Shown here: piece after piece, positions 31,170 through 59,122 of the stretch
Position numbering within the stretch: position 1 is the first letter of the stretch
Layout: each line of letters begins with the position of its first letter
Sequence record: PP456879.1
Reading direction: 5' to 3' (one strand)
DNA: 64,000 bases
Notes under the pieces: model-generated
What the model was told of the DNA's origin: nothing
Databases searched by the model: none
Seen by the model: only the letters and a program-made list of their open reading frames with translations
Position numbers and translations under genes: made by a program

Positions 31170-31703
31170 TTAACTTTCTAGATAACGGATTTGACCATTT
31201 TCTAGATAACGTGCTGCACCATTCTCTAATAGTCGGATAGTATCTGACGTATCATCAATACGTTGGATTAGTATATTACATTCACCATAGTAAGCATAGC
31301 TACTCGACATAGCTACTATCGTGTATGGAACAACATCCGTAGTTGCATTGATTGGTGTTGTATCAAATGAAACATCATCTGGACCAAGCTTCCAACCTCG
31401 TGAACGGTTAATTTCTTCAGCAATTGCTTTAGGTGTTAAAGTACCAACTATCTTAAGGATAGATCCTTCACCAATAGCACGTGGATCAGCAAAATCTAAC
31501 CGACGGTAAGTTAACATGTACTTAATGTCAGTAGTGATGTCGATCATTTCAATAAATGTACGTCCAGGCTCAATCGTGGTTGGACTAAAAAACATATCTT
31601 CAAATGTAACTGTTTCTGGTTTGAAGTTTATTTTTAAATCATCCCGCGCAAGTTTTACTAGCGCATTCCTCGATGCCATGTCATACGGAAAGATATCCTG
31701 CAT
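31170..31703 (-). CDS. Virion structural protein with C-terminal RxLENG repeats (phiKZ gp143-like)
   Basis: 177 aa; LTYRRLDF motif; ends RLLENGAARYLENGQIRYLES. Confidence 0.75.
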   Translation of the reverse strand: MQDIFPYDMASRNALVKLARDDLKINFKPETVTFEDMFFSPTTIEPGRTFIEMIDITTDIKYMLTYRRLDFADPRAIGEGSILKIVGTLTPKAIAEEINRSRGWKLGPDDVSFDTTPINATTDVVPYTIVAMSSSYAYYGECNILIQRIDDTSDTIRLLENGAARYLENGQIRYLES

Positions 31704-31750
31704 GTCAAACCTCTATAGTGGTAAAATGTTTAATCCACATAGCATTATAA

Positions 31751-31775
31751 AGCCTTCCTCTTCAAGAGGAAGGCT
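31751..31775 (-). terminator. Hairpin terminator
   Basis: AGCCTTCCTCT-tca-AGAGGAAGGCT. Confidence 0.8.
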
Positions 31776-31785
31776 ATTATAGTTT

Positions 31786-32181
31786 TTATTGCATAAGCAT
31801 CTTTATTAATTCAAAGGTACCTTGCACAATAGTCTTTAACACATTGGCACTTTCTTCTGACATAGGTGCACCAGATAAAACTACCATAGTAGATACTGAT
31901 GCCCCAATAAGAGTAACGCCACCAGCTAATACCAATACCGCATTACGGTAAGAATCTTTAGCCTTCACTTCAGCAATTTCCCGGCTGAGAATTTTATATT
32001 GAAGATCTGAATCGGTAATAGCATAAATTAGACTAAGTACTTCCTCACCAGTTATACTTAGATTTATACGTTGTTCCTTTTCCAATACACTATTCAAATA
32101 GGTACGTATCTTCTTTCCATAGTCTTTAGAAGAAGATAAAGGATTACCATCGATCTCAATCAGAACGTCCTCTAGGGTCAT
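31786..32181 (-). CDS. Membrane protein in the lysis cluster (holin/antiholin candidate)
   Basis: Likely start MTLEDV at 32181 (GGAG SD); C-terminal hydrophobic VLVLAGGVTLIGASVSTMVVLSG. Confidence 0.6.
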   Translation of the reverse strand: MTLEDVLIEIDGNPLSSSKDYGKKIRTYLNSVLEKEQRINLSITGEEVLSLIYAITDSDLQYKILSREIAEVKAKDSYRNAVLVLAGGVTLIGASVSTMVVLSGAPMSEESANVLKTIVQGTFELIKMLMQ

Positions 32182-56723: not shown

Positions 56724-56759
56724 CTGTAATATAGATCTTAAACTTTTTTTAATGTAATA
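56724..56759 (-). promoter_or_regulatory. phiKZ-type early promoter
   Basis: TATATTAC at 56726-56733; 35/36 nt identical to 5017-5052. Confidence 0.8.
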
Positions 56760-56768
56760 CAACATAAA

Positions 56769-56788
56769 GCCCTCCCCGAAGGGAGGGC
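56769..56788 (-). terminator. MCP operon terminator (cUUCGg)
   Basis: GCCCTCCC-cgaa-GGGAGGGC, ~90 nt past the MCP TGA but 9 nt past the in-frame TAA. Confidence 0.9.
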
Positions 56789-56797
56789 CTATGTCTG

Positions 56798-56878
56798 TTA
56801 CTCTTCTAACTTCCGGGCATTACCGTCTTCCAAATAACGGATAGTCCCATTTTCTAGATAACGGTAACCCTTTCCAGC
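56798..56878 (-). other. In-frame 26-codon extension after the MCP UGA (candidate readthrough domain)
   Basis: GCT GGA AAG GGT TAC CGT TAT CTA GAA AAT ... GAA GAG TAA = AGKGYRYLENGTIRYLEDGNARKLEE*. Confidence 0.65.
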
Positions 56879-59122
56879 TCACGGCTTAAGATCAGCAAGC
56901 TTACCGTTGAACTGAGTTTCGCCCATGACTTTCTGGAAGCCAGTGATCTTGAACTCTAGCGCGAACGGAATGTTGTTGACGTGTAGGTTGAACGGAATGG
57001 CCGCGATTTCGCGAGTAACCTGGTGACCACCACGAGTGATCGGTAGGTCAGCGATAACAGTAGATACGTAGAAGAACTGGCCCCAGGAGAGGATGTCGTT
57101 TTCTTGTTGTACTGCGCGGGTCGGAATTACAACTAGCTTACCATCAAATAGCTGGTTGTTGGTGGAAACGATATCGTACTTGAGATAAGCACCTAGAGTA
57201 CGGTCGTCACCTTTAGTCATTAGATAGTTAGCAATCTCTTTGTCGGAGCAGAAGAGATACATCGGAGTTTCATCCTGGTTACCGGAGATAACACGGAAGG
57301 CAGCTTCAATGTTGGAATCACGGTGAGCCGGGAATAGCTCAGCTTTAACACAGTTTAGGATCGCAGCGCAAACGTCGTCCCAACGATCTTTAGACTTGAT
57401 GGTGTCGATGACTTTCTCAAGATCTAGTTCTTTGTAACGATAGGTCGGACGCATTACAGCGGATAGTGCACCTTCGATGATACCAAACTTCGGACGGTTG
57501 TAACCATTGTGTACAACTTCACGTAGTTGAGCAAGGTAGTTAAGCATGCGCTTAACAGCGTTGTTGCTGTTACGGATGTTGGTGTTAACAGTTAGAGCTT
57601 TAACAACCTCACCCGGACCTTCATCGGTCATGGTGTCCATCGGTAGAGTTACAGGAGCGTGCATCGGGATCGGATGACGGAACTGTAGTGCACGGGTCTG
57701 TAGTAGGTGACCACGCTGACGACGGTTAGTGTTGGTGAAGCGAGTATCTAGTTCGAAACCGATAACAGCTAGGTCAGTTAGCTGATCTAGAATAGCTTTA
57801 ACAGCCGGGTCAGCATTATCCATTACCTGGCCATCTTCGTTTAGAACTTTATCGACGTAAGTGTCGGTAGCACCAAACTTAGTATCGCCTTTGGATAGGC
57901 TGATAGTACCACCAAAACCAACGCTTAGACGTAGGCTTAGTTTAGCAGTCTTAAGGTCGTTAATAACGCCATCAGCTGAACCGTCGATGAAAGTGGTATC
58001 GCCACTAACAACAAGGTCATCGCTATCGAAACGGATAACTGCGTTCCGGGTATCACCAACTAGATCGGGCTGGAACACAGCGCGAGGTAGACGGTCAACC
58101 TTGAACTTAACAACTTTACCGCCGAGTAGAACGAATAGGTTCTTTAGACGACCAGCCGGATCAATGGTGTCAGAAACTTCAAGCATGCCACGCTGAATGA
58201 GTAGGTTAGCATTGGAGTTACCCATTAGATCAAGACGTACGTTCGCTTTTAGCGGAGCAGTAGTGATAGTTAGGTTCTGCTCGTTCTTGATGGTGTACGG
58301 AGGAACAAGAGCCGGGTCTACGAAGAAGTCAGCATTGGAACCAGCCGGATCTAGGGCAGGAATTAGTGCAATGCTTTCGTCGTCGAGGATGGAAGGATCA
58401 CGATAGGCTTCTACCATGTTCACTTCTTCGTTATCCATCTTAACGCCGGATACTTCGTGGTAAACGTCTTTCATTACAGCGATGTAAGGAAGAACCTGAA
58501 CAACACCACCTTCAATCGGGTTGATAACGGTGGTCGGATAGATACGCTCAGCGAATTCATCCTGACGGCTAGCAGCTAGGTTATAACCAATAGTTACAAC
58601 ACGGAAATCACGCTGTGACTTCTCGTTATAGTTCTCTAGGCCAACACCATTTTCGAATACTTGAATGCCACCAGCAGGGCCATTGAACTGATGCTGTACA
58701 ACCTTAACATGATCTTCATTAGAAGCTTTAGCTTTGGTAATACCACGTAGTGCACGGATATATTTAGTTTCATCAGCACAGGCGATAGCAGCCATGGTAG
58801 CAGCAGTGATTTGGTTCTCACGGACACGTTCTTCACGAGCACGTACTTGAGGATCACTGGAACTTACTCGTTCGAAACCATAGTCGTTAACGAGCATTTG
58901 CATTTTGTTATAAATTGCAGCGGCATCTTGAATGTCGGTAGCTTGCACGGTACCGAAGTTTTCATGTGAAATGCTGCTAATAAGGGAACGACCTTGACTA
59001 ACAACGCTGTCATTTAGACCAATTTCACTTTCTAGGCGGCCAATGAAATCTTCCATTGAGAAGACTTCGTAATTCTTTTCGCCTTTGTGTTTAAACAGTT
59101 CTCTTAGGGCATGTACGCTCAT
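56879..59122 (-). CDS. gp120: Major capsid protein
   Basis: 747 aa; GLE/NYNEKSQRDF propeptide cleavage region; strongly biased codon usage; size and synteny of phiKZ gp120. Confidence 0.92.
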   Translation of the reverse strand: MSVHALRELFKHKGEKNYEVFSMEDFIGRLESEIGLNDSVVSQGRSLISSISHENFGTVQATDIQDAAAIYNKMQMLVNDYGFERVSSSDPQVRAREERVRENQITAATMAAIACADETKYIRALRGITKAKASNEDHVKVVQHQFNGPAGGIQVFENGVGLENYNEKSQRDFRVVTIGYNLAASRQDEFAERIYPTTVINPIEGGVVQVLPYIAVMKDVYHEVSGVKMDNEEVNMVEAYRDPSILDDESIALIPALDPAGSNADFFVDPALVPPYTIKNEQNLTITTAPLKANVRLDLMGNSNANLLIQRGMLEVSDTIDPAGRLKNLFVLLGGKVVKFKVDRLPRAVFQPDLVGDTRNAVIRFDSDDLVVSGDTTFIDGSADGVINDLKTAKLSLRLSVGFGGTISLSKGDTKFGATDTYVDKVLNEDGQVMDNADPAVKAILDQLTDLAVIGFELDTRFTNTNRRQRGHLLQTRALQFRHPIPMHAPVTLPMDTMTDEGPGEVVKALTVNTNIRNSNNAVKRMLNYLAQLREVVHNGYNRPKFGIIEGALSAVMRPTYRYKELDLEKVIDTIKSKDRWDDVCAAILNCVKAELFPAHRDSNIEAAFRVISGNQDETPMYLFCSDKEIANYLMTKGDDRTLGAYLKYDIVSTNNQLFDGKLVVIPTRAVQQENDILSWGQFFYVSTVIADLPITRGGHQVTREIAAIPFNLHVNNIPFALEFKITGFQKVMGETQFNGKLADLKP

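Follow-up and report, generated by a model that had tools for sequence, protein, structure and literature searches.

The window analysed here, a stretch of 64,000 nucleotides from sequence record PP456879.1, is the reverse strand of Pseudomonas phage phiKZ with 100% identity to AF399011 and NC_004629, and a window position is converted into a phiKZ position by subtracting it from 177390. We are concerned with the 3' end of gp120, the gene of the major capsid protein, where a TGA stop codon is followed in the same frame by a stretch of open codons that comparison with relatives suggests to be a read-through extension of the capsid protein. The features at this end of the gene are listed below.

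56879..59122, minus strand: gp120, major capsid protein gene; 747 codons and TGA; 100% identical to PHIKZ120 and to the 747-residue chain named 'gp120' in PDB entry 8Y6V
56879..56881, minus strand: candidate leaky stop UGA; G after it and the Pro codon CCG before it; invariant in 25 distinct extension-bearing relatives
56798..56878, minus strand: putative in-frame read-through extension; by translation 26 sense codons (56801..56878) and TAA (56798..56800)
56840..56863, minus strand: extension repeat 1, R-Y-L-E-N-G-x-x
56816..56839, minus strand: extension repeat 2, R-Y-L-E-D-G-x-x
56801..56815, minus strand: extension repeat 3, R-K-L-E-E, C-terminal
56767..56790, minus strand: intrinsic terminator of the capsid transcript, a hairpin with 7 G-C among its 10 pairs and a T-tract behind it; after the second stop

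An initial annotation of this DNA had read the gene end as AAG CCG TGA with a zero frame open for 26 codons until a TAA, and both the gp120 sequence and its translation bear this out. It had placed the terminator after the TAA and not after the TGA, and the hairpin with its T-tract indeed lies 7-9 nucleotides 3' of the TAA; compensatory changes are seen in this hairpin in relatives. The three R-x-L-E units at 8-residue spacing are likewise present in the extension, which matches the C-terminus of gp143 (31170..31703, minus strand) in that both end in a three-unit repeat, and the identity of 26 out of 30 nucleotides between 56834-56863 and 31182-31211 is correct. The extension also lacks a start codon: neither ATG nor GTG occurs in frame, and the single in-frame TTG is not conserved in relatives. 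The claim that its codon usage resembles that of the capsid gene holds only in part, since CGT, CTA and GGT are used as stated, but so are GGA, GGG, TTG and TTA, each absent from the 747 capsid codons, and CGG, which occurs there once. By itself, an open stretch of 26 codons behind a stop is not unusual. On the other side, a six-frame motif scan, taking in the whole 280-kb phiKZ genome piece by piece, finds the double repeat motif at only two sites, namely the capsid extension and the gp143 tail. The signal appears to reside in the conservation of the open stretch across genera, not in its openness.

We then present the conservation of this arrangement in relatives. The 47 phiKZ-like isolates are nearly identical and thus little informative, and the informative relatives belong to other genera. 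The TGA and an open, motif-bearing frame behind it are kept in PS119XW, PA1C, HPP-Temi, PhiPA3, Phabio, 201phi2-1, Viktualia, Psa21, D6, RVTF4 and Noxifer, and the same arrangement is found in 18 IMG/VR loci, or 21 by another count, and in three of the eight metagenome contigs looked up. The extension has 24-30 codons in relatives, with the zero frame open, and keeps the peptide pattern G...R-x-x-E-(D/N)-G-x-x-(x)-R-x-x-E-(D/E)-(G/S)-x-x-x-R-x-L-E. It is followed by a second stop of variable identity (TAA in 16, TGA in four and TAG in three) and then by the terminator. Both extension and motif are retained where the C-terminal region of the capsid protein is only about 60-90% identical, on either side of the tree root. 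A sense codon at the position of the capsid stop is found neither in the 47 phiKZ-like isolates nor in the other relatives examined, and the tail is fused to the capsid protein in none of 120 called capsid-protein clusters and in none of the 47 isolates. The alignment of the post-stop region across relatives, which had been proposed beforehand as a check, therefore shows a conserved frame and a conserved amino-acid motif with synonymous changes at the invariant columns.

Several observations on capsid genes of the family may be added here. Small open reading frames (ORFs) annotated as 'hypothetical protein' over the region in Viktualia (L032:1106-1204) and HPP-Temi (L036:854-997) were considered and rejected as they lie in the +1 frame, are not conserved and are probably gene-caller artefacts. 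The capsid gene of Escherichia phage Goslar ends in TGA-A and has 28 in-frame open codons up to its terminator (L035:1486-1575); the post-stop peptide is acidic, unlike the phiKZ repeat, and has no other match in phage records, and the relatives available are only near-identical, so that nothing is concluded from it. Some divergent capsid proteins, 57-70% identical (P0072, P0073, P0079, P0098 and P0117-P0120), have a low-complexity tail fused to their C-terminus, 15-35 residues long, in which Gly, Asp, Thr and Pro abound, and a C-terminal appendage on the capsid protein seems to be a recurring theme in the family. In addition, the JGI label 'virulence-associated protein VapD' on several capsid-protein homologues (P0040-P0045) is probably a misannotation.

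The identity of the stop codon is shown to be tied to the presence of the extension. Among 32 distinct 3' ends of capsid genes, taken from isolates and metagenomes, 25 have TGA with the motif-bearing extension and seven have TAA without extension, while no discordant case is seen (Fisher p = 3e-7, uncorrected for phylogeny). The weak stop UGA is thus conserved as that very codon at the end of the coat ORF in all 25 extension-bearing lineages, which is a mark of read-through. In a quick neighbour-joining tree of the last 290 capsid residues, rooted at the midpoint, the TAA lineages stand at no fewer than four, that is at least four, separate places, and TGA lineages are found on either side of the root. 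The simplest history would be an ancestral TGA with extension that was repeatedly lost, each loss going with a change to TAA. The terminator lies about 117 nucleotides past the capsid stop in TGA lineages and about 55 nucleotides past it in TAA lineages, and because it is about 60 nucleotides closer to the stop in the latter, the segment was deleted and not left to decay. The more distant chimalliviruses Ea35-70, RTH11 and RSL2 have TAA and no extension. As for stop usage in general, the 47 long ORFs of the phiKZ window end in TAA (31), TGA (nine) and TAG (seven), and the stop codon of the gp143 orthologues varies freely across the same phages. Considering the split between TGA and TAA, the spread over the tree, the deletion, the stop usage, the variable gp143 stops and the missing of fused tails, the TGA appears to be kept only where something to read lies behind it.

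The codon-level analysis of 23 distinct extension sequences gives further evidence of coding. The invariant Arg, Glu and Gly columns each use two to five synonymous codons; for example the first Arg column shows CGT, CGA, CGC and AGG, the second has five codons with AGA and AGG among them, and all four Gly codons are in use in the invariant Gly columns. Such synonymous switching at invariant columns points to the amino acid, and not the base, as what selection preserves. All indels among the extensions are whole codons, so the frame is preserved; frame 0 is open in 23 of 23, and stops are found in frame +1 in 21 and in frame +2 in 19 of them. The ratio of nonsynonymous to synonymous variation (pN/pS) has its lowest value, 0.63, in frame 0, with the other two frames giving 0.83 and 1.05, and the Arg, Glu and Gly residues of the repeat are under strict constraint. 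In short, the downstream zero-frame ORF shows protein-coding conservation and has no conserved start codon, as in read-through of the Qbeta A1 type.

It is of interest how the UGA would be passed. UGA is known to be leaky in bacteria. The base after it is A or G in all lineages but one (C in Noxifer) and is never T, and the residue before the stop is Pro, Ala or Gly in all lineages but one, which has Val. A C-terminal Pro is not specific to read-through, however, because the TAA lineages often end in Pro too. ARAGORN detects seven tRNA genes in phiKZ, namely Thr-tgt, Asn-gtt (two), Asp-gtc, Met-cat, Pro-tgg and Leu-taa (L084:16922-23641, phiKZ 266.7-273.4 kb), in agreement with the RefSeq annotation, and none of the seven is a suppressor tRNA with anticodon TCA. 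Since no such anticodon is present and TGA serves as an ordinary stop in other genes, decoding by a suppressor tRNA or through an altered code is excluded. Searching the segment against Rfam families, including the models of the selenocysteine insertion sequence (SECIS), gives only noise. Besides these, the segment holds a candidate RNA hairpin, which was defined by hand from the codon alignment.

56815..56870, minus strand: candidate RNA hairpin; base 8 nucleotides after the UGA; three nested stems GGG:CCC, CCGU:ACGG and AUGG:CCGU

The phiKZ segment folds at -29.6 kcal/mol with z = -3.5, and dinucleotide shuffles are less stable than the native segment in 19 of 20 relatives, with a mean z of about -1.9 for the relatives. 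Against amino-acid-preserving versions with random synonymous codons, 25 of 26 sequences fold better (mean z = -1.1). Several wobble bases are fixed: the third codon after the stop ends in G in 23 of 23 across four amino acids, and the codon preceding each conserved Arg ends in C in 21, 19 and 22 of 23 across five to seven amino acids. These bases form the nested stems GGG:CCC, CCGU:ACGG and A(C/U)GG:CCG(G/U) across relatives, and the cells of the hairpin are paired in 84%, whereas controls with one arm shifted give 27-53%. From the MAFFT alignment, RNAalifold finds only five pairs and the terminator, and the consensus is weak elsewhere. The hairpin is largely explained by the repeat codons and does not have the character of a SECIS element for selenocysteine recoding. 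To our knowledge, structure-stimulated read-through is not established for bacterial ribosomes apart from SECIS elements, and stimulation of read-through is a possible role of this candidate hairpin.

The second protein carrying the repeat is gp143, whose features in the window are the following.

31170..31703, minus strand: gp143; DUF7941-type N-terminal domain and repeat tail; described as virion protein and lysis regulator
31173..31235, minus strand: gp143 C-terminal tail, residues 157-177; three R-x-L-E-x-G units; R157, E160, R165, E168 and R173 invariant in 45 homologues

The three-unit repeat ends all gp143 homologues (45 clusters, together with the loci from isolates and IMG/VR) and accounts for five of the family's 15 invariant columns; it is the most conserved part of gp143. 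Between the extension and the gp143 tails the BLOSUM score is 48, against 18 +/- 4 for shuffled tails, and the likeness of the two rests on this alignment score and the motif. Gene conversion or co-evolution with the gp143 tail was considered and rejected, with similarity within a genome no higher than between genomes (14 genomes). The two tails therefore keep one motif independently, and the identity of 26 in 30 nucleotides reflects shared amino acids and similar codons. The extension peptide itself has no match in Pfam or among solved structures.

For gp143 as a whole, the AlphaFold model (mean predicted local distance difference test, pLDDT, of 89.9) has a compact domain of residues 1-150 and a tail with pLDDT 74-84 that forms isolated beta-bridges every eight residues. 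Its sole significant PDB match is chain 0 of 9xqd, 150 residues from the outer peripheral baseplate of phiKZ (E = 6e-7, template-modelling score 0.60/0.69). According to a preprint on phage Goslar, the DUF7941 protein gp127 has its N-terminal domain modelled in the 9xqd map, and gp126, gp127 and gp143 are the DUF7941 proteins of phiKZ, for which a head-to-tail assembly has been proposed with the peptide after the N-terminal domain docking on the next protomer (10.64898/2026.04.21.720040). A precomputed match to PF25613 is found in 15 gp143 homologues, and Pfam support is clear for gp126 and gp127 also; the predicted model and these matches assign the N-terminal domain of gp143 to the DUF7941-type fold. 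The protein is further reported as regulator of the holin gp142 (PMC12894885), and it is non-essential by transposon sequencing (TnSeq). As side observations, the records of phiKZ and 201phi2-1 name gp142 and gp143 (window 31170-32100) as structural proteins of the virion, in which mass spectrometry found them; three differing views of gp143 exist, as a virion protein, as a lysis regulator with gp142 the holin (PMC12894885, a paper of 2026) and as a protein of the DUF7941 fibre family (10.64898/2026.04.21.720040, a preprint of 2026); and a fragment of 99 residues, 92% identical to gp143 (P0122) and filed under Klebsiella pneumoniae, is probably an assembly contamination.

As to the position on the capsid, residues 728-747 of the capsid protein form a six-helix bundle around the pore at the centre of the hexamer, and in pentamers the same C-arm contacts gp244, a protein of the outer surface (PMC11297242; 8Y6V). 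Residues added after 747 would probably come out at the hexamer centres on the outer face, in an orientation that we infer from these contacts.

Taken together, the conservation suggests that the UGA of gp120 is a site of programmed read-through which yields a minor, extended capsid protein, and we regard it as quite likely that the extension is translated. The core of the initial annotation, UGA read-through giving a minority of extended capsid subunits, is thus supported by the comparative test as far as sequences can tell, with TGA in 25 of 25, a conserved frame and motif, TAA upon loss and neither a sense codon nor a fusion. In the mechanism we propose, most ribosomes would stop at the capsid UGA and give the protein of 747 residues, while a minority would decode it with a near-cognate host tRNA, most likely tRNA-Trp, add 26 residues and stop at the TAA just upstream of the terminator. 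The probable aids would be the weakness of a UGA with a purine behind it and the small size of the last residue (Pro, Ala or Gly), to which the RNA hairpin starting 8 nucleotides after the stop may add. The added peptide would repeat the unit R-x-(L/Y)-E-(D/N)-G three times at intervals of eight residues, the same motif as the C-terminal tail of gp143, and the tail would probably be on the outer capsid face in a few tens of copies at most. While the conservation pattern and the coding signature are observed, what we infer is that the extension is translated, at what frequency and with which amino acid at the UGA, and what the hairpin and the tail do.

Some of our own results weigh against this picture or parts of it. 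The overall constraint on the extension is moderate, with the pN/pS of 0.63 and a mean pairwise identity of 0.50, similar to the 0.57 in the last 12 columns of the capsid protein; by these numbers the extension is not better conserved than the capsid protein's own C-terminus. The extension contains codons that the capsid gene avoids, which fits rare translation, but weaker selection too. The hairpin has little true covariation, and its stability is partly a consequence of the peptide motif itself. In 8Y6V each of the 27 capsid-protein copies that make up the asymmetric unit is modelled no further than residue 747; rare tailed copies would be averaged out by icosahedral reconstruction. With regard to gp143, the extension and the gp143 tail of one genome do not co-vary (14 genomes with both, permutation p = 0.99), and therefore a direct one-to-one interaction between the two tails is unsupported. 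One gp143 homologue (L059, IMG/VR 3300009194_000027), in whose repeat tail the last of the three units is displaced, comes from the same sample as the extension-less TAA capsid genes L027 and L028; the main role of the gp143 tail is therefore probably independent of the capsid extension, and the tail persists without it if L059 and L027/L028 belong to one phage. Finally, phiKZ gp143 scores 18.3 bits against the DUF7941 Pfam model, below the cut-off of 27.

Other explanations of the conserved segment have been weighed against programmed read-through. It might be untranslated and conserved as RNA or DNA, for example as a structured 3' untranslated region that stabilises the abundant capsid mRNA or aids termination, with the open frame and the motif as by-products. 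That the segment folds more stably than the shuffled nulls in phiKZ (z = -3.5) and its relatives (about -1.9), is more stable than the amino-acid-preserving nulls in 25 of 26 sequences and has several wobble positions fixed across different amino acids would agree with this, but the invariant Arg columns switch between CGN and AGR and the Gly columns use all four codons, frame 0 is always open with the other frames rich in stops, and the indels are multiples of three. Moreover gp143 carries this peptide motif as a genuine protein tail, an untranslated RNA needs no upstream TGA and gives no account of the switch to TAA upon loss, and the RNAalifold consensus is weak outside the terminator, so we hold this explanation to be improbable. 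A separate small peptide, made by re-initiation or from a non-canonical start after the UGA, appears still less probable. Purine-rich stretches resembling Shine-Dalgarno sequences do lie behind the UGA in many relatives, but no in-frame ATG, GTG or TTG is conserved in the extension and separate initiation would not require the upstream TGA; the conserved Gly and Arg columns start 4-8 codons past the stop, and therefore the conservation runs from the stop itself.

It is also conceivable that the UGA is decoded efficiently, through selenocysteine with a SECIS-like hairpin, a phage suppressor tRNA or an alternative code, in which case most capsid subunits would be tailed. The hairpin shortly after the UGA speaks for it, and so does the selenocysteine machinery that the host genus has. 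However, no Rfam family including SECIS matches, no TCA tRNA is among the seven, nine of the 47 long ORFs of the window end normally in TGA, residue 747 is the last one modelled by cryo-electron microscopy in each of the 27 copies, and the codons of the extension are not optimised like those of the capsid gene, which leaves efficient decoding with a very small probability. Equally small is the chance we give to a decaying remnant, that is, an ancestral longer capsid protein cut by a nonsense mutation with the downstream codons drifting. Divergent relatives with fused C-terminal tails make a longer ancestor plausible, yet the motif is retained across lineages about 60-90% identical in the capsid C-terminal region on both sides of the root, a dead segment would gather stops and frameshifts as frames +1 and +2 have, and lineages without the extension have deleted it and switched their stop to TAA.

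If programmed read-through does produce the tail, its function may be that of a docking peptide of the gp143-tail kind, which we put forward by analogy and tentatively, as a possibility with the balance against it. The docking tag suggested in the initial annotation gains in definition here, since the tag equals the conserved tail of gp143. Two options of docking are considered: the tail would bind a partner of the gp143 tail, or it would bind the N-terminal domain of a DUF7941 protein (gp143, gp126 or gp127), head-to-tail as proposed for the family. A more elaborate scenario is speculative and rather unlikely as a whole. Here the tail would copy the gp143 tail on the outside of a few hexamers, finished capsids would capture a DUF7941 N-terminal domain or the partner of gp143, this would seed DUF7941 filaments on the head or couple the timing of lysis to capsid production, and read-through would be tuned by the hairpin 8 nucleotides after the UGA.

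Comparison with known systems shows what is shared and what differs. Qbeta A1 arises when a small share of ribosomes pass the leaky UGA that closes the coat gene, and the resulting coat protein, a minor form lengthened at its C-terminus, becomes part of the capsid. Like the Allolevivirus RNA phages with A1, phiKZ has a UGA-ended coat gene with a putative minor C-terminal extension. Unlike them, it is a jumbo phage with 280 kb of double-stranded DNA and an HK97-fold capsid, and its read-through is predicted from sequence; the extension of A1 is a folded domain of about 200 residues, whereas that of the phiKZ type has 24-30 residues of an 8-residue repeat. Frameshift-extended capsid proteins that are a minor form in the capsid include T7 10B and those of T3, Lactobacillus phage A2 and the Listeria phages A118, A500 and PSA (PMC5009743). 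What phiKZ would share with this group is that a capsid gene, recoded at its 3' end, gives two products; it differs in that the T7 10B group uses -1 or +1 frameshifts at slippery sites while the phiKZ extension is in the zero frame behind a stop, and many extensions of the group are Ig-like domains while that of phiKZ is a short repeat peptide. A frameshift origin of the extension was rejected, as the conserved ORF is in frame 0 and frames +1 and +2 bear stops in 21 and 19 of 23 sequences. Within Chimalliviridae, the DUF7941 (PF25613) proteins (Goslar gp22 and gp23; phiKZ gp126, gp127 and gp143) offer a likeness in that the extension shares the motif of the peptide after the N-terminal domain of gp143, and a difference in that the R-x-L-E-x-G repeat is absent from gp126 and gp127. 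The candidate hairpin, starting 8 nucleotides after the UGA with its pairing potential conserved, resembles the 3' read-through structures of eukaryotic viruses, a stem or pseudoknot about 8 nucleotides after UGA or UAG; unlike those stimulators, its covariation is weak and its pairing is partly due to the peptide repeat.

Our literature searches found no published capsid read-through in phiKZ or jumbo phages, and it is absent from both structural papers. A minority C-terminal extension of a capsid protein by recoding is already known, and this phiKZ-type case appears to be new. Furthermore, phiKZ is a model nucleus-forming jumbo phage whose capsid is solved at high resolution and whose virion proteome has been catalogued several times, and the product is in no annotation, structure or paper that we found. 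If translated, every capsid would have a few subunits with an exposed tag that is invisible to icosahedral averaging and to database-limited proteomics. The case would add stop-codon read-through to the recoding of capsid genes in double-stranded DNA phages, where only frameshifting is documented. It would link the capsid to gp143 and could explain the repeated finding of a cytoplasmic 'lysis regulator' in virions. The contrast of TGA with extension against TAA without it also makes a simple rule to find similar cases in other phages, and a hairpin-tuned case, if true, would be the first structure-stimulated read-through for bacterial ribosomes outside selenocysteine insertion.

In addition, two motifs lie beyond the terminator, ahead of the gp121 homologue. 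At window 56757-56767 on the minus strand, CTTTATG(Y)CGTC adjoins the terminator hairpin on its 3' side and is conserved across genera (L003-L036), and at window 56726-56735 on the same strand the motif (A/G)ATCTATATTAC, 25-40 nucleotides beyond CTTTATG(Y)CGTC, is likewise conserved across genera (L003-L036). By their position and conservation, these two motifs before the gp121 homologue look like a shared terminator-promoter junction.

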